Shown one piece after another: positions 3,070-50,100 of a DNA stretch of 64,000 bases (position 1 is its first letter; each line of letters begins with the position of its first letter). Source of the DNA: Monocercomonoides exilis PA203 (taxonomy: Eukaryota; Protista; Preaxostyla). The DNA is taken from assembly GCA_001643675.2 (NCBI GenBank), contig LSRY02000010.1:1612001-1676000 (forward strand). Reading direction: 5' to 3'. The notes under the pieces are model-generated. The model did not search any database, had not been told where the DNA came from, and saw only the letters and a list, made by a program, of their open reading frames with translations. The translations under genes and the position numbers were made by a program.

Positions 3070-3952
3070 TATTTGAAAAAGAATGGTTCACTTTTTCTAT
3101 TCTCCTTCGAATTGAATGAAGGAGTTATTTCTATTGGAAGACGATAAAAAATTTTTGATACATAATCAATTCTTGATCACACTTCTTTATCATCATTCTT
3201 GGCAAATGGAGAAGATCCTGGTACCTCATGATCAACTCCCTTAATTATTAACATTCTATTATTTATTCTTATTGTGCTTATTAGGTTTTAGGGTTTTGAA
3301 GAGTTAAACAATTTCATATTGGATAGTGTGATAGTTTAGGGTAAGCCTGGGTGACTTCAGACTTTTGACTTTGGAAAATTTGTTATTGACTGACTTTAAA
3401 AATGATTGAAGTCAAAAAACAGTTAAATTTTATTTAAATAATACATAAGTTTAACAGTTCATTTTTCATGCACTTTATAATTTCAAAATGAAAAAAAAAA
3501 TCAAGATTAAAAGAAAAAAAAAATTCTTATTGAATATATAATAATCTGAAAAAACTTTTTTAGAAAAAAAGCATCCGTTTATGGGTTTTGACCGGATCAG
3601 TTTTTTTTTGAAAATTGCCCAAGTCACAGACTGGTCGATCTTTTTTTGACTTTGAAAAATTTTCATGTCAAAACCCAACATGTTTGAATGTGAAAATCTT
3701 TTAAGTGAATTTCAGAATGCCTTGGTGGATAATCAAATAGTTCGTGCGTTTAATAACTAGCTTCGTTTGTTTTGATAATTGAAGCATGATTTTTTGTGTC
3801 GCTTAATCAGAAACTGGCTTTTGCAAGAAAAATGGAAGAATTGAACAATCACGGATGCTGTTTTCTAAAACTGGAGCAAGTGGGATCATATGAAAAAGGA
3901 GCAAGTGTGATGTTGCTAAATCTTTAATATTTTTTTGCTTTGATAATATTAG

Positions 3953-6711
3953 AAAAGTTTACAAGCACCCAAAGAAAAGTAATGAATATTTAACCAGAAT
4001 ATCTTTAGAGGTCATCAATAATCAAATATGGATTTCATTTTTTCCTTCTAACATTGATGGCTCTCCAACAAAAGAATATCATAAACAATATTTATGCCCA
4101 AATGTTCGTGGTAATCAAACATGTGGAACAAGTGGTCGTCGGAGTTACGTTGCAATAAGAAATCATCGTTGTTTTTTATTAGAAAATCGCATTATATTTT
4201 CTTTCAAAGAGAAGAAAGCTCTTCAAAAAATCGATCGCATAAGGGAGAGCAAAGAAAGAACACTGATTCAGAGCACATCCACCAATTTACAGACTTTATT
4301 TACGAAAATAATAAGCCATTGCAACATATCTTTCTTATCAGCGTCTTCAGAAGAATTTAATAATTTTATCACAGCCTTAATTCATTTATCTCAAATGAAT
4401 CCAGGACTGTCTCCGTCAAACATTTTCCCATTCCTTACAAGAAAGAAAATACGAAGAATGGTTATTGAGGACAGTGAATTTGCAAAACAGAAGCGTGATA
4501 CAGCACTGAGGGGAATGGGCGTATGCGTGATGATGGATTCAGGTGTTGTGGGAAATCAGAAGTGCACAGTTGTGACGATAGCTCCATTGGTACCAAATAC
4601 ATCATCAGTGTTTTGGAAAGCATATCCATGCTGCAATAATGCAAAGCAGTACAGAAAACTAGCTTGGACAGTAATTCGGGAACTGGCACTAATCAACGCG
4701 CATGTTCGATGTTTTTGTTCGGATGGCTTAAGTCCTCAAAAAAAAGCAATTGAAAATATTACAATTCCAATGGAAGATAATGAAAAATTACTAATAGAAA
4801 ATTTAAAGGCTGCTCCATTTTTCGTTTACTGTATGAATCATTTGTTGAATTTGGTTATTGTTCACGCGTTTTCTGAAATCCCTTTTCTGAAGAACCAGAA
4901 AACAATAATTACAGAATTTGCAAAAAATGCCCGCACTTCTTCTATGAAAAAATCCTTGAAACGGAAATGTCCGACATTTATTCAAACGAGATGGCTGTGC
5001 TTGTATTCTATTTGTTGCTTTATAAGAAAAAACAGAGAAAAGATATTTCACGAAAAATTATTACAATTCGATCAAATAAGAAACATTATAATCACAGAAC
5101 TTCTCCTTTTTCCAATTCAAAAATTACATTTGGAAATGGAAAATGAAAGAACAAAGATGGGAAATGTCTTTCCAAATGTGCTGAATGCATTCGGTTTGCT
5201 ATATGGAATCAAAAATCTTTCATTTATTAAAGAAACAGAATGGAAAAATGTTTTCGTTAATTTTATAATAATATTCCATAATTACATGTTAACCGGGAAC
5301 ACTGGTGAGTTAATATCATTATCGTATGTATTGTCTCCAACAGGACTTCAAAATTACATTCGAAATAAATTTTCAATTTCTTTTTTTGAAGCAGAAAAAT
5401 CTATTTCTTGTATGCCGTTGAATTCAGAGCCTAAGCAATTAATCTCATTACAACAATCCTCTTCAGCTTCGGAATATTCATCATTCACACGTTCACCTAT
5501 CATTTGCGCTTCAAATACTTCATCCAAACTTCCATCATCTTCGTCGTCAATTGAAACAAGCGTCAATCATCTAGATAAAGAAAAAAATATAACCATATCA
5601 AATTCAAGCAATGATTCAAAGCGACCGTTCAAGGATCAATTAAAAACAAATTCTTCCGATCATAATGAAAAAGATGTTTCAAATCATTCATCTCTAAGTC
5701 TTACGGAACAACAACATCAATCTGTTTGTTATTCTTTAACAAACGACTGTTTTTTGAAGCATTGAACCATGTGTCTGATGAACTTCATGAAATAAAGGAC
5801 AATTGCGTCCCGATGACAAAGTTGATAAGAAATGGAATCAAAGAAGATGAAAGTTATCAATCAATTGAAATTATCGAAGAAATTCACTGCATTATCAGCA
5901 CGGTGTCCAATTTCAAGCGTTCAGAATTTGAAACTATAGAAACTTCAAGAGAGGAAAGCAAAAGTGAAGAAAGCGAGACAGAGTCTAGTGAAGAGGACTT
6001 GTTTGGCTTATGCATGGCTGAAGATTGTTCAGAAGATGATGAATTTTTTATGTCCGAACCCTTCAAACAAAGCGAAAAGAAAAAAGATGAAACCATGAAT
6101 GAATCTTCTTCAATTCATTCAGCTGCTTCCTCCTGCTCTTCTTCTTCTGAAAGTTTTTCTTCAACATGCTTGACATCTTCTCAAACGCTTGTTTTCGAAG
6201 ATAATTCTCATGACTCACTTGAAGATTCAATGGAAGACGGAACAGATGAAATAGAATATGGGATAGATGATGTGGAGGTGCTGTTTTCAAACCAGAAGAT
6301 TAGTTTGATTTCCCGTCTGGAACCAGAAAAAGAGAAAGAAGTTTGTGATCAAGTGGTGTGTTCCATATCATCTTGCTGGGATACACGAATTAGACAAAGT
6401 TTTGAAAGATATATTACAACAGTTTTATCAAATCAATCGAAAGAAATCAGAGATATATGCTTCAAACTGTTTCTGGAATTTTTGAATGAAGCACCAAGCT
6501 TCATATATGAAGACGACATACAAAAGTTTTACGCAGAGATCACAAAGAAAGGACCTATTCAAACTATATACTCAAACATCTGTTTTTCATTAGTTTCGTC
6601 TCCATGCAGCGAAGCAAGCTGCGAACGTATTTTTCAAGAATGAAAAGGATCTCTGGTGACAGAAGGCATTCCCTATCATTAGAAGCTCTTAATGCTCTTT
6701 TAACTATTTAG
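3953..6711 (+). CDS. hAT transposase with two apparent 1-nt frameshifts; 5' exons possibly from ~3680
   Basis: Frame is open upstream of the 4395 ATG, with a BED-like W..C..C..H-x-C motif and NISFLSASSEEF. Catalytic motifs MMDSG (D1), FCSDG (D2), CMNH (CxxH), TRW, and SEASCERIF/SRMKRISGDRRHSLSLEAL (E plus hATC dimerization motif), ending at TAG 6709-6711. Confidence 0.88.
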
Positions 6712-8314
6712 CCTTTTGACAAAAGTGTTTTCATTTCACAATACTTTCAATAAATATAAAAAAAACAATAAATTATCTGTTTTCTTTTTTGATTTTCACA
6801 AAAATATCAATCAATATTTTCATGAATAAACAGCATATTTTAAGATCGTTCTTGTAAAGCGTTAATGTCAATGAGCAAATAAAAAGAAGAACATCTGAAT
6901 GAGGAAACTGAAAGCAATATTTGTGATGGAAGTAAACGATAAGGAGAATATGTGTTGCGTTTGTTGCTCTTTTCAATACAATCTCACTTCTTTTCTATGA
7001 ATATGTTCGAAGTCCTTTTATGGCTTTCAACATATCTTCTATGTCATGCATTCTGTCTTCCACACATCTTTGTGAATATCTTTTCACTTTCTGAATTCCG
7101 TTATTGTTTGTTGATTTTTCAATTTTATTTTAACTCTTCATTGATATTTCCAATTCTATAACAGCATCTTTTCCTTCTTCACCATCTTCTTCTTTTTAAC
7201 TTTCTTCTTCACCAACGGAGCTATTGTCCTTTCCCACACACATTCCACCGATTGTTGCTATGTTTCCCCTCATCCCACAGCCAGTCATCCATCTCGTTTC
7301 CTGCGATCAGCTGAGAGATTCCGTGCTGTTCACCATCGACGACTGCTTCTCTCTCAGCAAAGACGACCTGTCGCTTTTGAGGGCAGCACTCATCACGTCA
7401 GACATCATTCCCATTGGAATGAATGAAAGCACAACAACCGATGAAGAAGAAGATATTGAAGAAAAAGAAGAAATGAAACAACAGAATGACTCAAGTGAAA
7501 ATCGTCATCGCTATCATTATCATCGTCTTCTTCTTCATCTTTTTCCTCTTCCATTTTATTTCTTCTCAGTTAATCAGTCGAATTCCAAAGCGGTGCGTTT
7601 CAACTGCCTTTTGGATCGGTCGCGACACACTCGCTAAATGCAGCTCTGATCTGTCCAGCTGTGTCTCTTCTCTCTTCTTCAATGCTTCCACTCCAATTGA
7701 TGAGATTGTTCAAAACAGGAATTATAATGGATCTTCTCCTCTTTTCTTTTCCTCTTCGCCCTTTAGCATGTCTTCTTCTTTATCTTCTTCTGCTATTTCA
7801 AATCTGTCTCCTTCTATCTCCAATTATAATTCCAAATCTTCAGTCGCTTCTTCATCCTATTCGTCGGTAGTTGGCTCGCCTTGTGCTCATTCACATCTCT
7901 TTCCTGATGCTTTCCCACAAACATCCAGCTCTTCCACCTCCTCTTTCCATTCTTCTTCGTATTCCTCTTCGAATGTGTAATTTTCTCTGCCAAATTCTTT
8001 AGTTGCTCGCTTTCCTGTTGCTTTTTAACCTTTTTGCACTTGTCTTCTGTTGTGGTTTTAATCCGTTTGAGCACATTCAGCTGAGAGAGTGAATGAAGAA
8101 TGGAGAAATAGAGGCGAAGAAGGAGAAGCTGGAATGGACGATGCAGAGAGGGAAAGAGATAGAGAAAGAGAAGAAGAGGTCGAACATTCATTTGCCAATG
8201 AAAAGGATTGTGAAGATTGCACATGTTCCAATGAAGCAGACACAAACTCAAATAAGCATAAAAGTCATTCATTGTTCCATGTTGAAATAACAAGCTGCAG
8301 AACACCGAAGGTAG

Positions 8315-10985
8315 TTGAAAGAGATACAAAGCGGTTTTCAGAGTCATATGACAAGGACTAAGTTCCTCCTATCTCGTTTGAGTCTCCCTGGTAGCATTTC
8401 TCATTTTCTCGCTCTATTAAGCACATTCCGCATTTGGTGGCTAGCTCTCAACCAGCTTCATGTTCCTCTTCCTCCTCCTCCTCCTCCTCCTCTTTCTTCT
8501 TCTTCTTCTTCTTCTTCTTCTTCTTTGTCTTCTTCTTCTTCTTCTTTGTCTTCTTCTTCTTCTTCCTCTTCCTCTTCTTCTTTTGCTTCCACTGCAAAAC
8601 CTTCTTCTTCTCAAATCTCTTTGCGCACATCTCATTTCCAGGCAATCATCACCGCTGCCTCTGCCTCTCCCTATGCCGAGATCTGGGCCTTCCCCATCCT
8701 CCGCACTGTTTCCCTGTTGTGTGCCACTCTTCTCCAATCAGCCAACAGCCAGCAGCAGAACCTGCAGCTCCTCCACAGCAACACCCAAATCGTGCTGTCT
8801 TCTCTTTTGTCGTTCTTCGCCTCCTCTTCTCTCCCAACCTGCCGCGCTCCTTCTCTCTTTGCAGACTCCCTCCCTCTTTACACACTCGATTTCCCCCCTT
8901 CTCCTCTCTACCCTCCCTTCTCATCTGCCCAATGTGCTGTGCAGCTGACTAACATCATGTTCCTCTTCCCGACGGGAGTGCCTGTGCCGCCAATGCTCAA
9001 CCATCTGCGCAGCCGGCTTCTGCGCAGGTGTTGTGGAGAAGCAGAGATTGAGATGTTGCTGTGTGTTTTGCATCACAGCTTCACGAAAGCAGGCGAAGGG
9101 ATTGGAATTGCGAGATGTGTGGCTTCGTTGCTGTAGAATGGGAGGAGGAGGTTGGAAGGATGGGACGAGAGGTTTGATGGAGAAGAGGGGAGGAGAGTGA
9201 AGAAGGAGATGAGGAGGAGAAAGAGAAGGGAGGAAATGAAGGAAAAGAAAGAGAAGAAAGAAAAAGATGTTGATGGATGAATCAGATAGAAATTATGATG
9301 AAAAAGTTGAAGAAGCAAATGAGCAGACAAAAGAAGGAAGAAGAGAAGAAGGAGAAGAACAAAGAGAAGAAAACGAAGAAGATGATGAAACAGAATCAGA
9401 TTCTTATGCCTTCACCCAAATGAACCGCACACTTGTGTTCCAGTCAGATGCACAGATTGAGCGAGAGCGTCTGAAGATCAGCCAGCGGAAAGCGGAAGAA
9501 GAGGAGCAAGAAAGAGACAATCTGCTGTCTCTTCTGCAGGAAGAGGACAATGAGGCGATGTTAGACACACTCGAAGCATCGTTCCCTCATCTGCCGCGGC
9601 TGTACTGGCGAGCAGACATCTTCACGTTCCTCACAAACCGAATGGCGATGATACAGCCGTCTCAGCTGCAGTCGCTGGCGGCTTCGCTGGCAGAGGTTGA
9701 GTCCCTCACAGCTGCTCTTTCTGCGGCCTCTTCTTCTCTCCAATCGCTCGCCAGTGGAGCAGCAGGCAGAGGGAATGATGATGTGCAGAGAGAGGCGATC
9801 GAGCAGCTGAAGAGAGAGAGGGAGAAACTGGTGAAGGAGCAGCAGGCGCTGCAGACGAAGATGCAGAAGACGCCGCTGGAGAAGCTGATGAAGCCGCTTC
9901 CACTGCAGAACTGGCTTAGGTCTTCGCTCATTCTGAGGAAGCTGGCAGAGATTGTGAGGAAGCTGGCGATGCGGTTTGAGAAAGCTGGTTCGATGCAGAG
10001 CTTTGTTGACTCGCTGGTGAGGCATGTGGTGATGGAATTGCTGTCATCAGGGAAGTTTGTGGGGTGTTTGAAGGCGCATGCGAGGCAGACGAGGATGGGG
10101 TATTGGATGAAGAGGGAGATGAGCAAAGTGAATGGGAAGGACGAGGAAGGAGAGGAGTTTGGATGGGTTGATGATGAGGATGAAGAAGAGGTTGATAAAG
10201 AGGAGGAGGAGGAGGATGATGAAGAGAAAGCAGAGAAGGCGAGGAGAGAGAAAGAGAGGAAGGAAGAAGAGGAATGGGAAGAGGAAGAAATTGAGATTGA
10301 GGTGGAAGAAGAAGAAGCTACAGAAACAGAAGGAGGAGCAGAAGGAGCAGTGGAAGAAGTTAAAGATGAAAAGACAAAAGAAGGAGAAGGAGATGGAAAA
10401 GAAGGTGAAATAAAAGAAGGAGAAGCAAAAGAAAGAAAAGAAGGTGAAGAAGAAGAAAAAGAAAGCAAATTAGCATTGGACAAATCTCAGACAAATTCTG
10501 ATAAACCAAATGTGATGAAAGAAGGAGAAAAAGAAGGAGAAGCAGAAAAAGGAGAAGTCAAAGAGGGAGAAAAAGGAGAAAAAGAAGGAGAATCCACCGA
10601 TCACAATGCCTTAACAGTCAAGAGCTTAGCGCCAACAGATGCAGATGATGCAGATTTGTCAGTGATTTCGTCAGTTTCTGATCTTTCTGATGCAGAAAGT
10701 GAGATATCAGCTGAAGACAAGCAGCAGATGGAGATGCTGAAGGAGCTGGAGCAGCGATTGAGGGAGTTGAATGAGAAGAATGCGGCGATGCTGGAGGAGA
10801 AGAGGAAAGCGGAGGAAGAGATAGAGAAGGAGGTGGAGGTGGATGTGGATGGGGAGATGGAAGGAGAGAAAGAGAAAGAGGAAGAGGAAGAGGAAGGGAA
10901 GAAACAGAAAGAGAAAGAGAAGAAAGGGAAGAGCAAAAAGTTATCAAAAAGATTGTTCGGAGAAAGAAGAAGAATGCATCTTTGA
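8315..10985 (+). pseudogene. Cargo inside the hAT: host-like gene fragment(s) (ORFs 8315-9136 and 9267-10985), helical plus acidic
   Basis: Protein-like segments with poly-Ser and Glu-rich tracts like the host genes in this window. No clear start, no recognised domain. Confidence 0.5.
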
Positions 10986-11370
10986 GTGATAACATTGCAG
11001 AAGAAGGCAAAGAAAAAGAAGAAGAAGAGGAAGAAGAAGTTGATGGATGTGATGTTATTTTCACAGATGATTTCGATTTTGAGGGAGAATGTGAAAGAAG
11101 AGAAGTTTTATTTGAAAATTTCTTTGAAGAAGACAAGCCAGGAGAAGAAGAAGAAGAAGATGATGATGATGATATAGTTGTTGAGGATGAAGCCAATGAA
11201 GAAGAAGAAGACATAAGATTCAAACATAATGTTGAAGTTAGTGAAGTAGAAGAAGAAGTTGGCTCAACAGATGTTGCAAACGAAGCTGTTCTGTTTCTTG
11301 CTGTAGAGAAAGTGACAGCTTGTCCTTTGTGTCTGAAACGAGAAGAAGAAGAAGATAAAGAAGAGGGAGA

Positions 11371-11493
11371 GGAAGAAGAAGAAGAAGAAGAAGAAGAAGA
11401 AGAAGAAGAAGAAGAAGAAGAAGAAGAAGAAGAAGAAGAAGAAGAAGAAGGAGGAGGAGGAGGAGGAGGAGGAGGAGGAGGAGGAGGAGGAGA
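11371..11493. repeat. (GAA)n followed by (GGA)n trinucleotide microsatellite
   Basis: Direct reading. Confidence 0.9.
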
Positions 11494-13050
11494 ATAAGAA
11501 GAAGAAAATGAAAAAGAAGATAAAGAAGAGGGAGAGGAAGAAGAAGAAGAAGAAGAAGATTTAAATGAGAAGAAGAAGAAGAAGAAGAAGAAGATGATGA
11601 TGATGGTAAATGGATAGACCGAATTGATTAATTGTTGAAAATTGAGAAGATGAGTGTCAATTTATGTCAACGGAAAAATTCAATCGAATTTTCTTCTTCA
11701 GGTTTTTGTCTTTTGGAAAATAATAGCCTCTGAACCTTTTTCACTTTCAGCTCAATCCACTTTCTTTCTTTCCAACAAAAAATTGGAAATATAGAGCAAT
11801 TCCTTTTTCATTCCGTCTCTTTTTTTCGCTTCCCTTATTTCACAAAAAAATCATCTTTCCTCAAAAACTTATTCTTCTCCAAAGCACAATGCAAGCCATC
11901 TTCGATTTATCTTTAATTTCATCAATCCTCATTTCATTTTTCTTCCTTGCTTTTCTTCTTCATCTTCAAAGTCATCCTATCCTTCTCTCTTTCAGCATCC
12001 TGAATGAAAAATAAAAATCACTTCAAAAAAATAACCACAGTAAACCTTCTAAGCATTTTTTCAAGCAATTTTCTGTTTTTTATTCACTAGTCAATGCTTG
12101 TTTTCCTTTACAAAAAAATTCATTATGCCTTCGATTTTCAAGTGTTTCATCGTCTGATACTCAGTTTTCACTTCCAATCTTCTTTATCATGTGAACTTTC
12201 TTTATGAATTTGTAGAATAAACTCAATATTCTTGCAGATTAATAAGATATTCCACTTTTTGCTTATTTTCGAAAAGTTCCACAGGATTCCCCGAAAAAAG
12301 AGCATTTACAGATAATAGGCAAATACAACAATATGCAAACCAATTAGCTATCATTGACTGCAAGTTTGTAATTGCAAAAAGACATTCCTCAGAATAAGTA
12401 TTTCTTGAATTATGGTTCATAATATTTTCTTTCTTTTGTGAAAAAAAGAAATACATAATTAATTATTTCAAAAAACAGCCATACATTTTTATTCACTAAA
12501 AATTTGTGTTTATTGACTCAAAAATTTGAGAGAGATAAGAAAAAGCCAATTGACGTGAAAATATTCCACTGACTGACGTAACCATCAATTTTTCAATCCG
12601 TCAACCAGGCTTAGTTTAGGGTTTTACCGAGCAAATTTTTGGTTAGGGTTAGCCCTAGAAGAGATTTTCAAAATGAAAATGATATAAATAGTGGGTAGGA
12701 TCACCTTGGTACCATGATCTACTCCACTTGCCTCATTCTTCACAATTTCAACTTTTTTTTTAAAGTTCTTTTCTTTTCTTTTCTTATCATTTCTTTGTTA
12801 TCTTTTTTTCTTTTCATCTTTTTTTCAAGAATTAATAAATGGTTGGACAATGAGATGCAAAAGTTCCATATATCAAAAGGAATTGAAAAAAGATTGTCAT
12901 GAAAAATTAACAAAAGACATTAATCTTTTCTGAAAAAAGTTATATAATTATATTCTTAATAATTATCGAAAAACGAAAACTTGTGAAATTCAAGTTAAGC
13001 ATTGACTTAAATGCTTAATGATAGGTTCATTTTCTGTATTTGCTTCTCAG

Positions 13051-18376: not shown

Positions 18377-21300
18377 TTGTGCGAAAGCAGTACAATCATT
18401 CATACACAAAAAAAGATAAAAAGAAAGGAAATTTACGAAGATTTTTCAAAGAGTAAACCATCAAAGCACTTATCGAAAAAAAAATCAAGCATCAGCAAGA
18501 GCAGCTTTGTTTCCGAAAATAAAGAATATCCGCAGGATCCTGCATCTGAGATGGAATTAGTAATTGATAGAGCTCTTCAAGATGAGGAAATGAGACAGAG
18601 AAAAGGAATAAAGGCAAAGGAAATGAGCCAACCTCAAAAGGATATTGAGGCAAATGTGGAGTCAAACGAAAACATTGGAGGGATAAGATCAAGTCCATTT
18701 TTAACCAATGTTCCATATTTAACACACTCTCAATATGCAAATGGAAAGCAGCAGAATCCTGCAATTCCATTCACTTCTTCGTTTTCTCATATATCTCCTT
18801 CTTCTTCTTCTTCTTCTTCCGCTTCTCCTTCATCTTCATCATCATCATCATCAAAACAGCAAATGAATCCTAAAAACATCCACATTGCAAATTCTTCCAC
18901 TGTTCCCGCGTCTTTTGCACAGCACCTCGACATTTCCTTTTTGAATTCTTCATTCACTCAGCATCCAGACATGGTTCCTGTTGAATCGACTCCTCCAACA
19001 ACGCTAAAGGCAACACGAACAGAGCGAGGCAGATCGCTCCTCAGACATCTGCCTCCACCGCCTTTGGCTTTGGCAACGTCATCTTCTTCTTCCTCTTCTT
19101 CTTCTTCCTCTTCTTCTCATTCACCTTCTTCTTCTTCTTCTTCCTCTCCATCGTCCTCGCTAATCCAACTGAACGAGGCATCTTCGAATGTGTTTCTGCC
19201 TTCGACTCCTTCGCCTTCTCGCTCGAAGCGCCGAAAGAGCTCGCTTCCTTCCACAAAGCCACCTTATCTCTCACCTCGTTCTCAAAGCCCTTTCGACTTC
19301 CCAGCAACCCCTGCTTCCTTTGCTGAATCTTTCAGGCAAAGCTTTGAAAATGCTAATTTTCCTATTTCTTCTTCTTCTTCAACTTCTCCTTCTTCTCCTT
19401 CTCCTTCTCCTTTGGATTCATTCACTTCGCATTCTGCTCGTTCGTCATCTCTTCCAAGGCTGTCACAGAACTCACAACGAAGAAGGTCGCAATCACCTCT
19501 TGTCTCATCTCTTTTGAGATCCATTTCCAATTCACCTTCTTTTTCTCGCTCTTCTTCTCCTCGTTCTTCTTCTTCTTCTTCTTCTTCTCATTCATTCAGT
19601 TCTCAACCTCTCCGCACACCAATCACTTCACCTTCTCATTCACCTTCTCATTCACCTTCTCATTCGCATTCACTCACAACATCATTTCAGCAGCCTCCGC
19701 TTTGCGCTTCAATCGTCCCGTCTCCGCCACACCACGAAAACGCTCTTTCTTCTCCGCATTTCGCTTCCACCTCGCTTTTTGACCACGTTTCGCACACTTT
19801 GCCTCCATTTGCGCTGCCAACGACGAAAAGAAATGAGAATTCTTTGGCTTTTCCTTCAACTCCATTGCAGCCGTCTTCTATTTTGCATCGGTCGGGTAAT
19901 GTATCTTCGTATGTTTTGTCTCCTTCGCCTCAAAAACAAGAGAAGGAAAACGTGAAGTCATTGAAAGGAAGAGGGAAGCAAAGTCAAAAGCCATCTGATG
20001 AAGCAAAAGTTGATAAATCAGAAAAGCAGGAGCATCAGCAGCATCACAATCATCATCATCATCATCATCACAGTTCTCATAATCGGAATGAGCATCTCAA
20101 TGGCAAGAGAAGTTTACCGAATAAGGAAAAGAGCAAAACAAAGCCTTTGAATGAAAAAAGTTCTTTTTCAACTATTTTGCCAAAAGATGAGCAATATTCG
20201 AGTTTTGAAAAGTATTCTTCTTTTCAGACAGATCAACAACTGCCTTCTGATTTGTATCTGCCTTCCATTTCTGGTTCTTCATCAAGTTCATTTCTTTCTT
20301 CTTCGTCGTCATCATCTTCTTCTTCACCTTCTTCTTCTTCTACTTCTTCCTCTTTTTCTTCTTCCATCTTTCCCTCTTCTTCTGCTTCTTCTGCTTCTTC
20401 TGCTTCAGATGCCAGCTCTTCTTCCCCACCCCCTTCACAAACAGAGGATGAACAAAGCATTTTGGAAGAAGCACAAATAATAAAGTCGTCTTTGTCTTTA
20501 CTCACTTCACCACATCGTCTTTCGCATCATCATCTTCATCATCAACATAATCAACATCATCATCCTCACAAACAAAGCAATCATCATCGTTCTTCTTCAA
20601 AGAATTCTTCTGAAAGTTCATCTTCTTCGGAAAAACCTCCGTCTTCTTCTTCTTCTTCTTCTTCAATATCAGCAATTCCAAAAGAACATCATAAACACAA
20701 AAATCAAAAGAAAGAGAAGCAACAAGATGTTCATCATAGAAAACATCATCATTCAGAACACACTCAACAACCTTCTTCTGCTTCTTCCTCTTCCTCTTCC
20801 TCTTCTTTCCCTTCTCCTCCTTCTTCCTCTTCCTCTTCCTCTTCCTCCACCTCATTAGAAACACAGCCACTTCAGTCAATTTCATCCATCCTGCCTTCCA
20901 TTCACACACCTTCTATTCAACCATCACCACAACAATCCACTTCATCTTCTGCTCCGCTCTTATCACGTCAAACACCTCATCCTTCTTCTCCATCAAGTTC
21001 TGTACAAAATGAAAGGAATAGCAAAAAATCGACTTCTTCACAGCCAAATGACGATTCGGTTCCTGTTTCCTTTTCGCGTCCTTCGCTTTTTGGACGACTC
21101 CAACCTGTCAAACAGAATGAAATGAATGCAAACGATCCTTCAGTGAAAAAAGCAGGCTTAACTGCTTCAGCTTCAATTCCTTCGAATGAGGTCGAGATGA
21201 AAAAAAGTGAATTATTATTAGTTTCGAAGCAAATGAATTCAAATTCTGAGAAAGAAGATGTCAAAACGGAAGGTTCAGCATTGTCTTTAACAAAAATTGA

Positions 21301-24300
21301 AACTCCTTCAAAACAAAAACAAGAAACTCCATTGAATAATAAACCTGTCCAAGATGCTGATTCTTTGCCTTCTCAAAACAGACCTCAGCTTTTATTCAAC
21401 AAAACAGTTCATCCAACTTCTTCTTCATCTTCCTCTTCTTCTTCTTCGAAAAACAAGGAACAAAGAAAAGATTCAGATATTAAAGAGAATTCATCAAATG
21501 CACCTTCAATACAATCTTCATCATCGTCTTTATATGAACCTATTTCTCCTCTTCCTTCTCCGCCTTCTGCTCCAGAATTTTCTGAAGATAGCAAACAAAA
21601 AGATCTTCAGAATGAAGAACTTGGAGCTGATGATGAAAAGGATGAAGGAGAAAGAAACAAGAAAGAGAAAGAGAAACGAGAAAGCGAAGCAAAAGAAGAA
21701 GATGATGAAGAAGATGAAGGTGATTCTACAAATAACAAAGAAGACAACACGCTGCTAGATGAAGACGACAGCTTGCTTTCTTTACCATCGCTGTCATCAA
21801 CAGATTCAGATGCAACTGAATTGGAAACTCCGCCTCAGCCATTTGAAAGCGAAGAAAAGGAATTTGAAGCAAAAGATTCAGAGAAATTGAATGAAGAGAA
21901 GTTACAGATAAGCAATGAAACCGGAAAATTCATTTCTGAAGGTGTTAAAAAAGAAGAAGAGCCACAAACAAAGGACAATGAAACTTCTTCTGTTTCACCG
22001 CCATCGCAACCTTCTGCTTCTGCTTCTTCGAATTTCCTTCCTGTTTCACTTGCTTCCAAATCAGATGGGGAAAAAATAACACAACTTCCATTTTCGCTTC
22101 CACTTTCACTTCCACTGCCTCCACCTCCGCCTCCGCCTCTGCTTTCTCCTTTGTCTTATCATTATCATTCTTCAACAAATTCACCATTTTCGCCAAGTGT
22201 CACGAAGAATAATGTATTTATTTCTTCTTCTCCTCATCATTCGGAACAATTACTGTCTTCATCTAATTCACCAAAGATTTCTTCTCAAAACACAGAAATT
22301 GATCACTTAAGTGAACCTTTCATCGCAAAGTCTCCTTCATCAAGCTCTTTTCCTTTATTTCCAGTTCCCTCTCCTCCCTCTCCTCCCTCTCATCCGTCTT
22401 CTCCTTTTACTCCACATTCTCCACCCACTTCTTCTCCTTCTCCTTCTTCTCCACCTCCAATCCCACCATTGGATGATGATTATGACGATGATGATGAAAA
22501 TGACAATTTCGAAGAAAATAGCAAAGAACCAAAGCCAACAAAAGAAGAACCTTACCAAAAAGAAAGCCCAAACAAAACGCCAATTCAAAAATCTGATCAA
22601 AACGCAACAATTTCTGGATTAACGAAGCAACAATCACAAAAGACACAATCGTTATTACCTTCATCTCCACCTCCACCTCGTGTTCCTGTTCATCACTTAA
22701 AGGCACATACACATAATCCTTCACCTCTACGTTCATCTTCATCTTCTACTACAACTTCTCCTTCTCCTTCTTCTTCTTCTTCAAATGCTCTTCAATCTCC
22801 TGCAAAGCATAGCATTTCCAATGATATTCCGCCACTTCCTCGGCAGATTGTGCAGCAGAACCGCTACATGAATGAGCTGCGTTCTTTGGCATCTTCTTCT
22901 TCTTCTCCTTCTTCCTCTTTCTCTTCATCGCCTTCCTCATCTCCCTCTTCTTCTTCTTCACCTCAGCACAATCCTTCATTGTGTGCTATTCTTCTGAGCA
23001 GAATTCGTGAAAGACATGAAAAACTGGATGGAAACACAAAAGAAGTCGAAAATGAAGAGAAGCAAAAAAGAAAGAGTGACATCGAAGCAGTTGATTCAGA
23101 ACAGCACATTGGCATTCCAACAAATCAAGTAATAAGCAAAGGAGAAGACAAATCGAACAAAAAGGAAGAGAATGAAGATAAAAATGAAAAGAAAAGCAGA
23201 ATGGAAGAAGATTCATTGGATCTTGCTTCACCTCCTCCTTTGCCATTTGAAGAGAATTCTGAAAGCTCAATAGCACTTTTATCTGATTCTGAAGAACTTG
23301 AGGAGCCACCATTGCCTCCAACTTCATTTACTCCTCCTTTGTCTTCACCTCCCTCTTTACCTCTTTCTCCTTCTCCTTCTCCTCCTCCATCATCTCTTGT
23401 TGCATTGCCAGAATCGCCTTTATCTCCTATTTTGCTTTCTCCACCTTTTCCTTATTCCTCGCAGCCATCGCAAACGGATTCATTGCATCAACATGCAATT
23501 GATTCTCTTTCTCCTAATGCTTCTCTTTTAACCCCTCCTCCTCTCACTCCTCCTTCTCCTCCTTCTTCTCCTTCTTCTCCTTCTCTTTCTTCTCCTCCTC
23601 ATTCTCCTCTTCCTCTTCCTCTTCCTCTTCCTCTTCCTCCTCCAATTCAATCTCCAGTTGATTCTTCTTCGCTCTTATCCACTCCACCATCTGTTCCATC
23701 AACTCCTACAGAGAGCAAAAATGAAGCAGAATTGCCTTCTTCATCACATGATTTGGACACTGCATTTCTTCAGTCACCGCCTTCAACTCCTCCTCTTTCT
23801 CCTCCTCTTTCTCCTTCTCATCAACAGTCAAATTCTCCTTCAAAATTGATGGCTCCTTCTTCTTTTGTATCAACTCCTCAAAATATGCCTTCTTCTGCTT
23901 CGCAATCTGCATCTCAACCGCATTCAATAAGCACTTCATCACAATCAGTTCTTCAGCATTTGTCAGAAGAACCTGATGACACAACCGAATCTGATGAAAT
24001 GTTAACTTCTCCTCCTTTTCCTCCTTCTCCTCCTTCTCCTCCTTCTCCTCATTCTCCTCATTCTCCTCATTCTCCTCCTTCTCCTTCTCCTCCTTCTCCA
24101 CTTCCTTCATTGTCTCCGTTGATATCTCCCAACCGCTTCACTCACACAACAGCTGATAAATCTGATGATGAGGACATTTCTGCTTTATCTCCAAGTGATT
24201 CAATGAACAATGAAATATCACATACAACTTTACCAAAAGCGAAAAATCGTTATGAACTTGATGACGACGATGATGCAAATGATGAAGAAGATGAACAAGA

Positions 24301-27300
24301 AAAAGAAGAAAGTGATTTGTCTGTGAAAAAAATTGAAAAAGAAGGACATGTTGAAAGCGATTCTGTTTTGATAGAGAATTCTTCAATAGAGCAATTTCCA
24401 TTGGAAGAGAAACAGGACTCAAATGAAGGTGATTCCAATGAATCTGATTTGAATGAAAATGAAGTTCTTTTGTTACATCAGCCAGAAGATAACCTTTTCA
24501 ACGATCAGCCATCTGATTTTGTTTTGACTGAAAGTGATGTTTTGAAGGAGAACGAAAGAAGGGGATACAGCAGCAGAGACGAGGAAGGATCAATTCATTC
24601 AGAGGGAAATGAAGAAGAGGGAGTGTTGAATGAAAAGGCAAATGAGAGAAAAGGCATTGAAAATAATGATGCAACTGAAGAGTCAAGAAACAATGACTCA
24701 ATGGAAAAAGAAAAGACAGGAGAAAATGAGGAAGAGAATCTGAATAATAATAAAGAAGCATCAATCAAACATGATGGATCATTAGAAAAAGAAGAAGAAG
24801 AAGCTGACAAAAAGCCAGTGGAAGATGCATTTAACGGTGAAACCGAAGCAAAAGAAATGAAAAAAAGAAAGTTTACAGAAGAACCAATCTTTAACCGGGA
24901 AGAGGATGAACGTCAAATTAAGTCAGAGCCATCAGAAGAAGCAACAACTGACAAGAAAGAAGAAAAAGATGTTGAAGTTGATGAACAAGATAATAAACAG
25001 AAATGCAAATTGTCAAAAGAAGATTCAGATGAGAAGGAAGATGTTGCCAGTATGCATTCAGCCAGTGACAATGAAAAGAAAAGTGAAAAAGATGAAGCTC
25101 AAAGTGAATTGTCGAATGAAAAGAATGTTGAAATTGAAGATGAGCAAGAAAATGAAAACACTTCAACAGCAGAAGTTGAAAGTGGAATGGAAAAGGAAGA
25201 TGAACTGATCAAAGATGAAAGAAAAGAATGTGAAGAAGAGAAAAAAGGCAGTATCACTGAAACAAGCTCAATTCTATCTGAAAAGGAAGAAACTTCTGAT
25301 TCTCCGTCGATTGCGGTACAAAATGAAGCATCAAATGATGAATTCAATGAAAAAAGCCAAATGTCAGAAGGGAGTGAATCGGAAGAAAAAGATAATGAGG
25401 ATGTTAATTGTGGTAAAGAAGATGATGAAAAAGAAGACATCGCTGAAGATAATGAAACAAAAGATACAATTATCACAAAAGAAGAAGTTTCTGTTGAAGA
25501 AGGGAGCAATGAAAGCGAAAATCATTCAGAAGGACAACTAGAAAGAGAAAAGGAAGGCACAGAAATTAAGCAGAATGATGAAAATGAGAAGGAAATTAAA
25601 CAAGACATTGAAGAAACTGGAAAAGATAAACAGAACAATGAAAAAGAAGGTGATGAAAGTTTGAAGGAAACTGAAGAAAATTGTAAAGAAGGAGAAAAAG
25701 ATGAGAAAGAAGAAGAAGATCACAGAGCAACGGATGAAGATGAACAAAGAATGGAAGATGAAAAGCATTCAAAATGTGATCATGACGAACAAGAACGAGA
25801 AGAAAAGGGTGAAAGTGAAAAAGAAGAAGAGATTGAAAAAGATATTGTAAGCAATGAAGAAGAAGAAAATGCAGAAAAAGCTTGCCATGAAGAAAAAAAT
25901 GATCAAATCAAAGAATTTATTGAAGCTGCACATGATAGTGAAGATAATCAAAAAGAGCAAGAGGAAGAAGCGAAAAATGAAAAAGAAAATGAACAAAACA
26001 ACAAGCTTGAAGATGATTCGAAAGAAGGAGGAGGAGAAGAAGAAAAGAGCGATATAAATATTCAACAGAAGGAAGGTTCAAAAGAAGAACTGGATGAAAA
26101 ACGATCAGAGAATGGCAAAGTTGCAGAAAGCGAAGCACAAATTGAAAATGAAGAGAAAACAGAAAGCTCTGATGAAAGCGAAGAAGGAGCAAATAATGAA
26201 GATAGAAAAGAAAGAGCATTTGATAACAGTGAAGCATCAACCAATGGGTTTGTTGATATGAAAGAGAAAGAATCGCAAAAAGACAACAATATTGACATTC
26301 CTGTGAGCCAAAGTAAAACCAATCTTGAAAATGATGGTAAAGCATATAGTGAAGATGAAGACTCGATTGAAAAAGAAGACAAATGTTCTGAGGAAGCTGA
26401 AATGGATGAAAAAGATGAAAGAAAGGAAATATCAGTTTTAGAAGATTCTCAAAAAAGTGACTCGATGGTTGAAGAAGATTCGAAAGAGAAGAAATATCAA
26501 GAGAATGATAATGTTAGTTCACAGGAACCAGAAATGGATGAATATGTTAAAGAAAATGGATTAAATAATGAAAAGGATGAAAACAGTGAAATAACAGTAG
26601 ATGAAAAGAAAGATAAAAAGGAGGATGAGGGAGATGAGGAAAGAAGTGAAAGAGATGAAAAAGAGAAAGAAAAAGATGATACAGAAAAGAGAGAGATGGA
26701 GAAAGGGGAAGGAAATGATGAAGATGATTATCAAAACGATGAAGAAGCAGATAAAAGGAAAGATTCTGAACGAGAAGACGAATCAGAAATTGAAAGCGAT
26801 ATGAAGAAATCAGCTGAAATGGAACAAGATCCTCAACATTTTGAAGAAACGAACAAAAACACTGGAAAAGTTAAAGATGCTTCAAACGAATCAGAAAAAG
26901 AAGATATTGATAGCCAAAATGATGTTAATGATGAACAGTCTTTGAAAGAAAAAAACGATCAATGTGGAGTTGAGCAGGCAATGGACTATCCGCAGAATCA
27001 AAGTGTTTCTGTCATTGAATCAGAAGAAGAGGAAACTGATTTAACTTCAGAAACTAATAAGGAAACTGAGAATGTTAATAATAACCATGCGAATAAGAAT
27101 TATTCAAAGGAAGAAGATATTGTTGAAGAACAAGAAATCAAACAAAATGATAATCTGAATGAAAATGATGAAGAAGACAACGAAACAACGAGGTCAGAAA
27201 AGGATGAATCGAAAGAAAAAGATGTTGATGATTCAAAACAGAATTCAGAAAAGAATGAAACAGCATCAACTTCAGCTGATGAAATGAAAGATTTAGAAGA

Positions 27301-30300
27301 ATATCAAATTGATAATTCAATCGAAACTTCAATGAAAAATGAAGACTTTAAAGCAGATGAACCAAAAGAAATGGAAAAGGATTCTCAAAATGAAGAAGAT
27401 ATTGAAAAAGATCAAGATGATGAGAAAGAAAAAGAAAGAAAAGAAAAAGAAGAACAAAAAGAGTTTGAAGAACTAGTTTCGATAACTGAAGTGCTGGGTG
27501 ATGAAGTTCAAAATAATAAACTTTTGAATGAAGAAGAAGAACAATCTGAAAAAGGAAACTTGCCACTTGAAGAAGAATCGAAAGAAGAAGATAAATCGAA
27601 AGAAACGAAGGAAGATGAAAACATTGACGATATTCAACCAACAGATCAGAATCAAACGAACAATTCTCTTCTTCCAACATCCAGTGACATTGATGTTCAA
27701 AATGATAACAACACAACTGAATCAACCTTGTTTCCATCTCATTTGAAAAGTAGTGAGTCATCTCTTGCTGCAAAAGAGCCACAAGAAATCGAATCTTCAC
27801 TGGAAAATGGAATTCCTCTCAATTGCACTCACTCAATGACACCAGCTCCAGAAACATCAGCTCCTGGTTTAGTTTCAATTCCTTCACAGAGAAGCTTTTC
27901 AACACCTCTTTCCACTTCCACTTCTGCTTCTGCTTCTCATCTTCAGCCAGCTGTATCGGCTCCTTTGCAATCTGAATCTCAAAGTGAAATCCCTCCTGAA
28001 ATCAATAAAAAACCTAAATCTGCTTCTTCTTCTGCTGCTTCTTCTCAGCTCAGAGAAAGTGCATCGAATTATCAATCTCCATTCCATTCTCCAGTTGCGT
28101 TGCATCCAGCACAGCTTGCTGATAAACCAGAGCAATATGAAGAAGAAGAAGAAAAAGAAAAAGAAAAAGAAAAAGAAAATACGCATGTGAATGATGAAGC
28201 AAGCAAAGATGAGAAAAGACAAAAGGAAAATTCTTCGGATAATGTCAATATCAATTTCGAACATAATTCGCCATTTGAGAAAGGTACTTTTCCAATTACT
28301 GAGAATGAAAGCAATAATTGTTCAAAAGAAGAACAAGAAGAACCAAAAAGCTTTTCAAACGCAAAAAAGCAAGATTTCAACGAAATTGATCAATGGCAAA
28401 AACAAGACACAGAAAATGACATTCAACAGCCTTCGAAAATAAATGCAGGCGATTTGCTGCTTTCTCATCATTCGAACTCTGCTTTTTCTCCGATTCAAAA
28501 AACTTTCAGTCAAGAACAAGAAGAGAAAGATAAAGAAGCTGAGGAGAAAAGTGATAATCTCAGCTCTGACAACAAAAGTGCAGGAAATTCAACGACAAAG
28601 AATGAAATAAAGCCAACAAAGAGCAACAAAGTGAAAATTGATTTGCATCCAAAGAATTCAAACGAAAAAGTTGTTTGGGGGAAAGGAGAAAAAGAGGCAG
28701 AGAAAGAAGATACGAACAAATTGCGAGGCGTGAAAAATGTGACAGATGAAAATATTCAAACAGAAAGAGATGAAGACGAAACAAAAAGCAGAAGTGAGAT
28801 TGTTCATACTCCTTTCAGTTATCAAAGTAATTTGGACGAAGAGGAAAAGGAAGAAGGAGAAAGAGAAGGAGTTTATGATGATGGCAATGACGATGCAGAG
28901 GAAGATTTTGATGAAGCCATTGAAGGAGAATTAAAGAACAAGCACAGCAGCGATGACGATCTTGAAGACGATGAAGACGATTCGCTGCTGATGCAGCTTG
29001 TTTTGACGCACACGCCATCGCTGAGTCGAACGCAGAAGATTAAACAGCAGAAGCTCCGTCGATCAGTCACACTGCCATCGCCGGGCGAGTGGTTCACAGA
29101 CAGCATCGCGAAGGAGATTGCAAAGGCAGCGCCGAAGAAAGGGGCAGAATGGGCGAATGAAGAGACACATTCACTGAAGGAGAGCGAAACAGATAGGAAT
29201 GGAAATCAGACTGGGGATGAAGAATATGAGCTGATGGAGGCGTGGGAAGATGTGTTTTCACAGCGATCGCATGAGTCTAACAAGGAAAAGGAAAATAAAG
29301 TGACAGAAATGGAAAGCGAAAAGGAGCCTGAAAAGAAGGAAGAGGAGGAAATGAAAGAGGATGTCAAAGAAGAGGATGAAATTTTACAACCTGAAGTTTA
29401 TTCAACAGAAGTTATTGAACAACAACAACAACAGCAGCAACAGCAGCAACAGCAGCAACAGCAACCACAACAACAGCCAATAGCTGAAGAAGTGAGTGAA
29501 GTTAAAGAAGAAACAGAAGAAGTTTCTTCTTCATCATCCAGAAAAAGCGAAAAGGACGAAGAAATTGAGGATGAACAATTCCATTTTGATGATGAACATA
29601 AAGAGCAACCTCAGGACGAAAAGCTACAGGATGACAAAAATGATAGTAATGCTTCTATTCATTGTTCAAATGAGGAGAATTCGATGGACGTTTGGGGATT
29701 GCTTCGCGATCAGACAGGCAGTCCTTTGATTGACATTCACAAATTTGATAGCAGCAATCAAATTGAAGATGAGAAACAGGATGATTGTATTTTGAGTGAC
29801 GATATTATTGATCTTGTTGAGGAAAGAGCAAATAACAATAAAGAAAGTGAAAATTTCAATGAATCAAATGAGTCTGATTTTGAGAAAGAGGATGGAGAAA
29901 TTGATGAGTGCAAGAATGAAAAGGATCCAAAGGAAGTCGAAAATGAAATCGAAGACGATAAAAAAGAAAAAGAAAAAGAAAAAAAAGAGGAAGAGGAAGA
30001 AGAAGACGATGATTATGAAGAAGAAACAAGTGCGAGTCAATCAACCAAAGATAGTTCTGATGAAAGCGATGTCGTGATGGACAACATGGAAAGCTATGCC
30101 ACTGCTGGAGTTATGAGACTGCTCGAAGGAACAATCAACGTTTCGCAGTTTGAAGAGGATTCTCTTATGTTAAATGAAGATAAAAGAGATTCAACAAAAA
30201 CAGAGAAAGAAATAACATCAACGGAAGCAAAAGATGGAAACGAAGCGAAAAACTTATCTTCTGTTTCATTTGAAGGAGAACCCAGTTTAATACTCAGCAA

Positions 30301-46036: not shown

Positions 46037-46346
46037 AAGAATTACACTGAAATAGCTCATTTCGTAATAGTATGCTCTTGTTTGAATTAAATTGTTTTTA
46101 CATTTATCTATATTTTTTTTTTCTTTTTTTTCATTAGAAGGAACGGATAAATGATACCTTTTCGAGACAGAAAAAATAAAAGATGATAAATCTTTCTGAG
46201 TTTCTTTTTTGAAAAATTTTTATGTTTAGTTTTATGTTTTAACGAAGCAAAATTTCTGATGATTGCATATTATCTTTTTACGATATTTTTTAAAAAAAAA
46301 AAAGATTGCAAAAAAATAAAAAGTCTTCATGATAAATGTATATTTT

Positions 46347-46740
46347 GGCAATATTTAAGAAAGGTGGGCAAAATTGATCTGACCCAGTATAATTATATTT
46401 TTAGGGTTAAAATTCAAAAATAATCTCAGTATTAATTGCTTGGTTTAGGTTGTAGGGTTAGCGTAACAGTTCTTGGGCTTAGGGTTTTGTTCCCGCTCTT
46501 CTTTTTAGGGTTTGCGCTCGAAAAAAGTGGTTTATTTTGTGATCAAATTTTAGGGTTAGGGTTTTATTATAAATATTTGTTTAAGAAAAGTATAGAAAAA
46601 TAGAGCACTCTAGCCGATCGGCACCAGCGACTTGCTAACAAACTTGCAAGTTGGTGAGTCGAAGGTTCGAACCCGGAGGGGTGCTCTTTTTTGCCATTTT
46701 TTAAATAAAAATTTTTTGCCCACCTTTCTTAAATCATGCC
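46347..46740. mobile_element. 394-bp GG-terminal MITE (Merlin/MULE-like) with TTAGGG motifs and a tRNA-like unit
   Basis: TIR ggcaatatttaagaaaggtgggcaaaa (46347-46373) matches the reverse complement of 46714-46740 at 25/27. 8-bp TSD tatatttt at 46339-46346 and 46741-46748. Confidence 0.9.
46603..46692 (+). ncRNA. tRNA-like RNA polymerase III unit (non-canonical or tRNA-derived)
   Basis: Terminal stem gagcactc/ggggtgctc, A-box tagccgatcgg (46611-46621), B-box ggttcgaacc (46664-46673), T6 terminator (46687-46692). The T-stem and anticodon arm are non-canonical. Confidence 0.65.
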
Positions 46741-47156
46741 TATATTTTTTGTAATTTTTCATTTTCGGTCAAAACAAACGGTTATAGAATGATAATTCTA
46801 ATTTGTTAGAATTTAAGGACTTTCAATTTTCATTGGATGATGTTGTTTTTTCAGATATTTTCATCCATTGATTGAACGATTGTTCAGCTATCTGATTTGA
46901 TTTATAAGATGAATTGCACAATTTTTGTGTTATTTTGAAATTTTTGTAAAATTTTGAAATTAGTATATGTTATTTTGAAATAACCCAATAATTTTGAAAT
47001 TTTTTTTTATTTCACAATTCATCTATTAATATTCTTATATTACCTAAAATGAATGAAGTTTTTAAAATTTTTGCTCTTCAGTCAATCTTGATTATCGAAA
47101 GAAAATTGTAAAGAATATGTGTTAAACTGAAATATGAACTTTTTTTAATTTTTTTA

Positions 47157-48640: not shown

Positions 48641-50100
48641 CTATGCCCGCTCCTTCTTGGGATATCTCTGAGGGGACATTGGCCCGGTCGTTACCCCCTC
48701 AGTGTTATCCCCTATCTGTGCTATACTTCTTCCACTGTGCTTCCTCCGGTCTTTCCCTCTCTTCTTCAGCGGCGTTGGATCCTTCTCTCCTGTCAGCTCA
48801 CAAATATTACTGGGGATAATGGAGGGTGTCTTCTGAGGACTCGGTTGTCGAGGTGTTGAGCTTCGTGAATGAGTTGTTTCACTTCTCCTTTCTTCTCCAC
48901 TCTGCAGATTCATTCTTCCCCTTGATCGCTTTCTCGTGAGTTTCTTTCTGATTCCGAATCCCGCTTTGGGTAATTCATTAGCTCGATCTTTCATCTCCGT
49001 TTCTGATATCTCTAGCGTCCCTTCCTTCATATCTCCCATCTTATCTATCTTATAATCTTCTCCCCTCTGGGATACTGATCCACCGATCGTCTCCAGAATC
49101 CAATTTGTGTCTTGTACCGGTAACACGGTATAATATTCCTGGCCCACTCTCGAACCCGGAGCCCATCTCGCGTAAGCATTGATCGCCTTCCAGTCTGCTC
49201 CCTCTTGTCTTGCTAAGTGTGTGATCACTGCGTGTCTTATGGAGTATGCGGTGAAAGATTCGGGAATTTCGTTCTCTCTCAGAATAGCTGTTAGTTCTTC
49301 TTTAATCTTCTGCAAGCTTGCAGGTTGCATTTCCTTGATATCGAACCACACATGTTCGCTCTTAAAGGTCGTCTTCGTATAGTCCATCCAGTGTTGGAGA
49401 GCCTCAACTGCATCGATACGTGGGTTGGGGTGTTTCCGTATTATAACTTTGATAATCTCACCTCCCGACGTCTTGGTTCGTACCTGTGTTTGGATAGAGT
49501 TATCTTTAAATGTTGTTGTCTCTCTTCTCATTCTTTCCAGCTCTGCTGGCCTTAGGGCACCAAAGATCATAGTGAGAATGAGGGCTCTCCTCTGGAGAGT
49601 CCGAATATCTTTAGAGTCGTAGGTGCTCTCAGCCCATCTTGTGATAATTGTCAAGTCCCACATTGATTTGTATCGTTTTCCCCTTCTTGGCTTATCCCCC
49701 ACATAAGTCTTTAGAAATATTTCTATGTCCTTTCGATCGATCTTGGTCTCTCTAAAAAGATTGATGGACTCCAGTACTTTAAGGACTGTCTGATAAATCA
49801 CTCCACTTGAGAGGTTTGTATTCGAGAGTGTTTCGATGAACTCTGCCATAATCCACTTCGCATCTTTTGTTGTGAGGGGGTCAGTGTCGTCCATGCTCTC
49901 TCTATCAAGGAATTGTTTAAATCTTCGCAGCGCTCTCCACGTATCTCTTTCGCTCTTTTGACTTCTAAGTATTGCTGCTGCTATCTCCCTTGCTCCAACG
50001 TATTCTCCCCATGTTAAGAAGAGGTCTCTTCCTTGTATATTCTCTTGCCCAGTGTGACGGCTATCACCTCTCCTGGGGGTAGTTTCCAGCCTTCCCTTCT
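48641..50100 (-). CDS. DIRS tyrosine recombinase (distal part of ORF 48641-52312; true start uncertain)
   Basis: FGALRPAEL (R), VRTKT (K), YSIRH (HxxR variant), RWAPGSRVGQEYY (W and catalytic Y). Confidence 0.88.

Follow-up and report, generated by a model that had tools for sequence, protein, structure and literature searches.

Does a transposon that lies within a telomere-like sequence choose that sequence, or has it landed there by chance? The question is raised by a locus in a 64,000-nucleotide stretch of the Monocercomonoides exilis PA203 genome (contig LSRY02000010.1, here contig 2; the whole stretch is referred to as the window), in which a DNA transposon of the hAT superfamily interrupts a 252 bp miniature inverted-repeat transposable element (MITE) at an internal box that resembles the telomere repeat. 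The account that we favour, and hold to be very probable as a whole, comprises insertion of the MITE, later insertion of the hAT element and membership of the latter in a young lineage with a preferred target word.

The hAT element is nested in a Merlin-type MITE

A preliminary description of the window reported two nested sets of terminal inverted repeats (TIRs), each with an 8 bp target-site duplication (TSD). On reading the boundaries of both elements we found every listed feature in place and each coordinate correct (Table 1); the outer TIRs are about 25 bp each. It had also been proposed that an empty form of the 252 bp MITE should be sought elsewhere. We searched the genome (82,301,135 bases in 101 contigs, an Oxford Nanopore assembly; PMC8767320), in which the window copy is the contig 2 locus, with each half of the MITE and obtained 34 and 27 matches at 69-97% identity. 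The two halves are exactly contiguous in more than 20 other loci, giving 252 bp copies of 70-96% identity, and most of 24 MITE copies have an 8 bp TSD of their own, perfect or matching at 7/8 positions. The uninterrupted copies, of which there are at least 25, represent the empty site: their sequence is ..GATGGTTTAGGGTTTTACC.., and GTTTAGGG is present once at the junction. Since the 8-mer is single in the empty copies, it was duplicated by the inner insertion, which is proof of the nesting and of the order in which the elements arrived.

The 14-nt inner terminus occurs 59 times in the genome, compared with two occurrences of a reversed control, and 13 pairs of ends, 4-25 kb apart, are flanked by perfect 8 bp TSDs in 13/13 cases. 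Taken with the contiguous MITE copies, these counts show that the arrangement is not a product of chance. The 252 bp non-coding Merlin/IS1595-type MITE first entered an AT-rich intergenic stretch, duplicating tcattctt, and the 9.27 kb hAT element later entered an internal telomere-like box of the MITE, duplicating GTTTAGGG. A staggered 8 bp cut of the target is what a hAT transposase is expected to make. Nesting of a hAT element in a Merlin MITE is ordinary in kind.

Merlin elements are recognized by a TSD of 8 or 9 bp and TIRs starting 5'-GG, and at least seven published families from Monocercomonoides sp. PA203 have a 5'-GG terminus, 8 bp TSDs and TIRs of 23-29 bp (PMC8101967). The outer TIR of our element starts with GGCAA. 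A genome search with its TIR pattern yields, in addition, five elements of about 1.34 kb, one of them at C55:191665-193003 (contig 55; other loci are given in the same form). The part of this element at C55:191707-193003 contains an IS1595/Merlin-type transposase that is broken across several frames, and two adjoining fragments match DDE_Tnp_IS1595 (PF12762) with scores of 26.2 and 24.2 bits over profile positions 41-86 and 90-131, the broken state of the gene leaving each just below the 27-bit cut-off. The 5'-GG terminus, 8 bp TSDs and approximately 25 bp TIRs, held in common with IS1595-encoding elements, identify the outer element as Merlin-type; it is a MITE in being 252 bp long, non-coding (too small for a transposase), multicopy and bounded by TIRs and TSDs. 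The 1.34 kb family is its likely parent. Unlike the published Merlin families the outer element is non-coding and carries three telomere-like boxes, and the 1.34 kb partner that was read is broken; the likeness is at the superfamily level.

Two further MITEs deserve mention. A copy on contig 16 (C16:1137765-1142799) is interrupted twice, by about 4.6 kb near MITE position 62-67 and by about 180 bp near position 187; the ~4.6 kb insertion has its own terminal inverted repeats and neither insertion has the hAT terminus studied here. Within the window, a second MITE with GGCA termini, at positions 46339-46748, contains a tRNA-like stretch and several telomere-like boxes.

It had been suggested that the 9.5 kb composite of MITE and hAT element might move as one unit. 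Each outer TIR is close to its own consensus (0 and 1 mismatches), and such movement is conceivable. A second MITE-hAT junction was sought throughout the genome and only the window has one, so the suggestion gains no support there; the other MITE copies found are all uninterrupted except that on contig 16, the insertions of which are unrelated.

Family, transposase and cargo of the inner element

The inner TIRs differ at a single place, the right repeat having T for G at position 10. TGAC/GTCA words are enriched approximately fourfold in the terminal 250 bp of the element. The transposase gene of the window copy is read in three pieces, the first of which contains zinc-finger residues Cys68, Cys77 and His91, catalytic Asp215 and Asp277, a CxxH motif (Cys313 and His316) and Arg366/Trp367. 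In the second, an acidic/serine-rich insert is accompanied by the first part of the hAT C-terminal domain (SEASCERIF). The reading frame is lost at two homopolymers, T6 (5750-5755) and T5 (6630-6634), at which the gene is either broken or mis-called. Two sister copies, C9:549752-559031 and C32:120112-129489, have no stops in this region, which in each forms one uninterrupted frame of 939 codons, and the lineage thus still has potentially functional copies.

A word-index protein search with the transposase gave no match; an exhaustive protein search gave 207 homologues. None of the ten closest library homologues was recognized when scanned against Pfam, and more distant ones (E values of 1e-24 to 1e-9 to the query) carry Dimer_Tnp_hAT (PF05699) above threshold. 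In an alignment of 40 sequences, Cys68, Cys77, Asp215, Asp277, Cys313, His316 and Arg366 are invariant, His91 and Trp367 are conserved in at least 90% and the C-terminus has an SE..CER..S consensus. A profile built from these sequences matches the Hermes transposase (2bw3, 4d1q and 8edg) with an E value of 1.6e-14, with the CxxH, TRW and SE..CER motifs aligned, and every family-bearing top match in an ESM Atlas feature search belongs to hAT families. Together with the 8 bp TSDs and short TIRs, the Hermes match and the conserved motifs establish that the inner element is a member of the hAT superfamily.

The element resembles Hermes, Ac and hobo in its 8 bp TSDs, short TIRs and subterminal short repeats, in a weakly defined target that favours T at position 2 and A at position 7, and in a transposase with the motifs D, D, CxxH and RW and, C-terminally, SE..ER..S. 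It differs from them in that the transposase is very diverged, such that neither it nor its closest homologues are matched by any Pfam hAT model, and is long (939 amino acids) with the acidic/serine-rich insert, and in that the element has approximately 5.7 kb of extra DNA. Relatives of the transposase occupy at least 71 loci in the genome (from 314 first-look candidates) at 34-53% identity, many with open frames of at least 900 codons. A literature search found no family-level description of oxymonad hAT elements. Among public sequencing data, a search found four DNA runs, all of a single sample from which the assembly was probably made; RNA runs were not found.

For the survey of insertions, 1.5 kb per side was taken around all 59 termini. 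Short MITE partners of the 31 solo termini were sought within 1.5 kb and none was found. At C80:1563626-1570925 two B-type hAT ends face one another 7.3 kb apart, with outer flanks that are identical in mirror orientation; this is a palindromic arrangement and not a normal element.

The window copy belongs to a group of four young copies that are 98-100% identical. Two of its internal regions, 6750-8510 and 11540-12450, are common to 4 kb transposase-less relatives at 83-90% identity. The intervening segment 8537-11020 is absent from these related 4 kb elements and occurs only in the four young copies and at C25:398355-400817 (90%). It holds a Glu-rich open reading frame (ORF) of 572 codons (9267-10985), to which Pfam assigned no family, the cargo ORFs having been checked against Pfam only. 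Inverted GAA/CTT-type simple repeats edge the cargo at 8464-8612, overlapping its left end, and at 11340-11488, about 320 bp past its right end. We infer that this ~2.5 kb segment is probably captured host DNA and that the transfer ran from host to element. A stretch of about 2.5 kb that has a 90% identical counterpart at one other locus, and none in the 4 kb relatives, recalls the gene-carrying (Pack-type) DNA transposons, but the inner element also keeps its own transposase gene.

Target choice of the young lineage

We compiled 45 independent insertion sites of the family, oriented by subterminal sequence. Their consensus is nTTTAAAn: 62-64% of the sites have T at position 2 and 53-57% have A at position 7, compared with a background frequency of about 31%. 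A target of this kind is usual among hAT elements, for which the consensus is nTnnnnAn. G at position 7 is found in 2% of family sites outside the three considered below.

Two of the four young copies, those in the window and at C9:549752-559031, depart from this consensus and reuse the same G-rich 11-mer: in each the TSD GTTTAGGG precedes ttt (together GTTTAGGGTTT), and the orientation relative to the element is the same. On contig 15 an older relative, the two ends of which show 92% and 74% identity, also has ttt after its TSD, ATTTAGTG. The 11-mer GTTTAGGGTTT is rare, being present at 62 sites in the 82.3 Mb genome (118 for a reversed control), about 10 of which are within the 252 bp MITE family. 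The target model of the family treats GTTTAGGG as neutral (weight 0.6-0.7). For the 45 sites, the probability that any two have a TSD this unlikely in common is about 3e-4, a post-hoc figure, and within the lineage of eight copies it is about 1e-5, the three extra identical bases not being counted. The recurrence is statistically striking and thinly sampled, and we infer that the young lineage likely uses GTTTAGGGTTT as a real but non-exclusive insertion hot spot, over and above the weak nTTTAAAn preference. The word is used by two of the eight lineage copies (three with the looser match) and at 3/45 family sites, which falls short of strict target specificity.

The preliminary description had proposed that the element prefers telomeric-repeat motifs and that TSDs and flanks should be tabulated over all termini, with a generic hAT target counted as an outcome against the proposal. 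Both outcomes appeared in part. A near-identical copy does lie in the same GTTTAGGGTTT, in the same orientation and in an unrelated MITE, and GTTTAGGG recurs in the tabulation, but most insertions are in generic AT-rich targets with the nTTTAAAn consensus. It may therefore be asked whether targeting is generic throughout, the common GTTTAGGG(TTT) being a coincidence and the boxes happening to be frequent in MITEs and other repeats where insertions survive. The ordinary consensus over 45 sites would be expected on this explanation, as would the lack of a telomere-like motif in most TSDs and the presence of several other family insertions in repeats; an identical pair of TSDs somewhere among 45 sites is moreover not unusual under the target model (about 0.5), although that figure is driven by AT-rich words. 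The word in common is neither AT-rich nor favoured by the model, however, and the tail probabilities given above leave aside the three extra bases and the orientation. Even within box-bearing MITEs, insertion in the same register would have a chance of about 1 in 600 by a rough, uncomputed estimate. We consider generic targeting alone to be an unlikely explanation.

The two insertions might also not be independent, if the element and its target had been carried from one site to the other between similar host repeats, through segmental duplication or gene conversion. In favour of this, the copies on contigs 2 and 9 are 99.5-100% identical and both are within MITEs carrying telomere-like boxes. 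A third copy, at CTGGTCAC, is equally identical, however, so that the identity reflects a recent burst. The contig 9 host is framed by 110 bp inverted repeats and is 81% similar to window positions 46374-46525, the telomere-box part of the MITE at 46339-46748, and shows no similarity to the 252 bp MITE; the homologous site in 46374-46525 reads GCTTAGGGTTT and is empty. The flanks of the two copies are unrelated past the 11 bases in local BLAST comparisons; we therefore rejected gene conversion or duplication as the source of the common TSD, and we regard dependence between the two insertions as highly improbable.

A more indirect form of targeting deserves attention because, at both GTTTAGGG insertions, the surrounding MITE sequence carries an array of telomere-like boxes. 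The hAT transposase might be tethered by a host protein that binds the boxes of Merlin MITEs, the MITEs thus acting as protein-marked landing pads. Also in favour of this, two of the three boxes in the 252 bp MITE are conserved at 0.93, equal to the TIRs, compared with 0.85-0.88 in the surrounding sequence. Conservation is lowest (0.85), however, in the box that received the insertion, the 8-mer of which is kept in 11/23 copies; neither of the other two young copies lies close to a box, and a binding protein is not known. That register and orientation are exactly the same also fits direct readout better than loose tethering, which we judge to be rather improbable. If the hot spot is real, the transposition complex would read the GTTTAGGGTTT DNA directly.

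Whether the MITEs matter as hosts is a separate issue. The earlier idea that they serve as landing pads was not borne out: some other family members are also in repeats, but repeats make up 46% of the assembly (PMC8767320). A fuller proposal, that the young lineage has acquired a sequence-level preference for GTTTAGGGTTT and that the word, with about 60 free sites in 82 Mb, is partly supplied by the boxes of Merlin MITEs, which would hence be safe landing sites, is one that we put forward tentatively.

The telomere-type motifs are rare elsewhere in the window, as had been stated: the two TSD copies are its sole occurrences of GTTTAGGG, and TTAGGG/CCCTAA hexamers number 12. In the flanks of the insertions there are eight TTAGGG hexamers in 82.6 kb. 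The telomere repeat of M. exilis is TTAGGG (PMC6759080). GTTTAGGGTTT holds one such unit, yet neither GTTTAGGG nor GTTTAGGGTTT can occur within (TTAGGG)n, and none of the 59 flanks shows an insertion in a telomere repeat array. True telomeres are therefore not the target, and 'telomeric' describes a resemblance only; we think a link to telomere biology improbable.

Several points weigh against our account of a young lineage with a preferred word. The hot-spot claim is based on two young insertions and one looser match, and this match, ATTTAGTGTTT in the older relative, is already favoured by the generic target model (weight 2-3). The other two young copies have the TSDs CTGGTCAC and GGATGGAA. 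A search for the motif joined to the terminus, with one mismatch allowed, found only the three known elements; three older copies, at C59:311916-312368, C22:1010893-1011345 and C47:420513-420966, gave no match to this pattern and therefore probably lie in other targets. The null model assumes independent positions and takes k-mer frequencies from a small local sample. The junctions and the two frame breaks are read from the assembly alone, in which homopolymer breaks may be consensus errors, and a Pfam scan of all ORFs and of the transposase pieces gave no direct hAT match.

Features of the locus and significance

The features of the nested pair are collected in Table 1.

Table 1. Parts of the MITE and of the hAT element within it, in window coordinates
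Feature	Positions	Strand	Remarks
Outer TSD, left copy	3193-3200	no strand	tcattctt
MITE, left part	3201-3341	+	141 bp of the 252 bp Merlin-type MITE
Outer left TIR	3201-3225		Starts GGCAAATGGAG at 3201
Telomere-like box in MITE left part	near 3283-3298
Target box, also left inner TSD	3334-3341		GTTTAGGG (gtttaggg)
hAT element	3342-12613	+	9,272 bp
Inner TIRs	3342-3355 and 12600-12613		14 bp, 13/14 match; left is TAAGCCTGGGTGAC
Transposase piece 1	3894-5762	+	623 codons
Transposase piece 2	5669-6640	+	Different frame
Transposase piece 3	6511-6708	+	Third frame; end of hAT C-terminal domain
Internal region	6750-8510	+	Common to 4 kb relatives and the contig 15 copy, 85-90%
Probable captured segment	8537-11020	+
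B-side internal region	11540-12450	+	Common to many family members (73-86%)
Inner TSD, right copy	12614-12621	no strand	GTTTAGGG, then ttt
MITE, right part	12622-12732	+	111 bp, with telomere-like box TTAGGGTTAGCCCTAG
Outer right TIR	12708-12732		Ends CTCCACTTGCC at 12732
Outer TSD, right copy	12733-12740	no strand	tcattctt

Elsewhere in the window, a 1,223-codon ORF at 48641-52312 on the minus strand has reverse transcriptase (RVT_1) and tyrosine recombinase (Phage_integrase) domains and thus marks a DIRS-like retrotransposon, and positions 18377-31726 on the plus strand are a single open frame of 4,449 codons.

Some mobile elements are known for their choice of target. The TRAS and SART retrotransposons insert in the telomere repeats of insects. 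Dada DNA transposons insert in small RNA genes (PMC3706591). The hAT lineage described here likewise reuses one short sequence that is carried by multicopy, presumably dispensable DNA. It differs from these elements in that it is without strict specificity, at most 3/8 copies being in the word, in that the word is outside any true telomere array and in that integration is of the ordinary hAT kind.

Nested transposons and cargo-carrying hAT elements are routine. The lineage itself is new, invisible to Pfam and a genuine hAT. Its link to Hermes through the profile would be useful for annotating the 35% of the assembly that is labelled 'unclassified repeats' (PMC8767320). If the GTTTAGGGTTT hot spot is true, the lineage would be one of the rare eukaryotic transposons of the cut-and-paste type whose preferred target is both long and specific. 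The sister copies, with their 939 open codons, provide a concrete protein for testing the hot spot, which, if true, could be of interest for the engineering of targeted integration.

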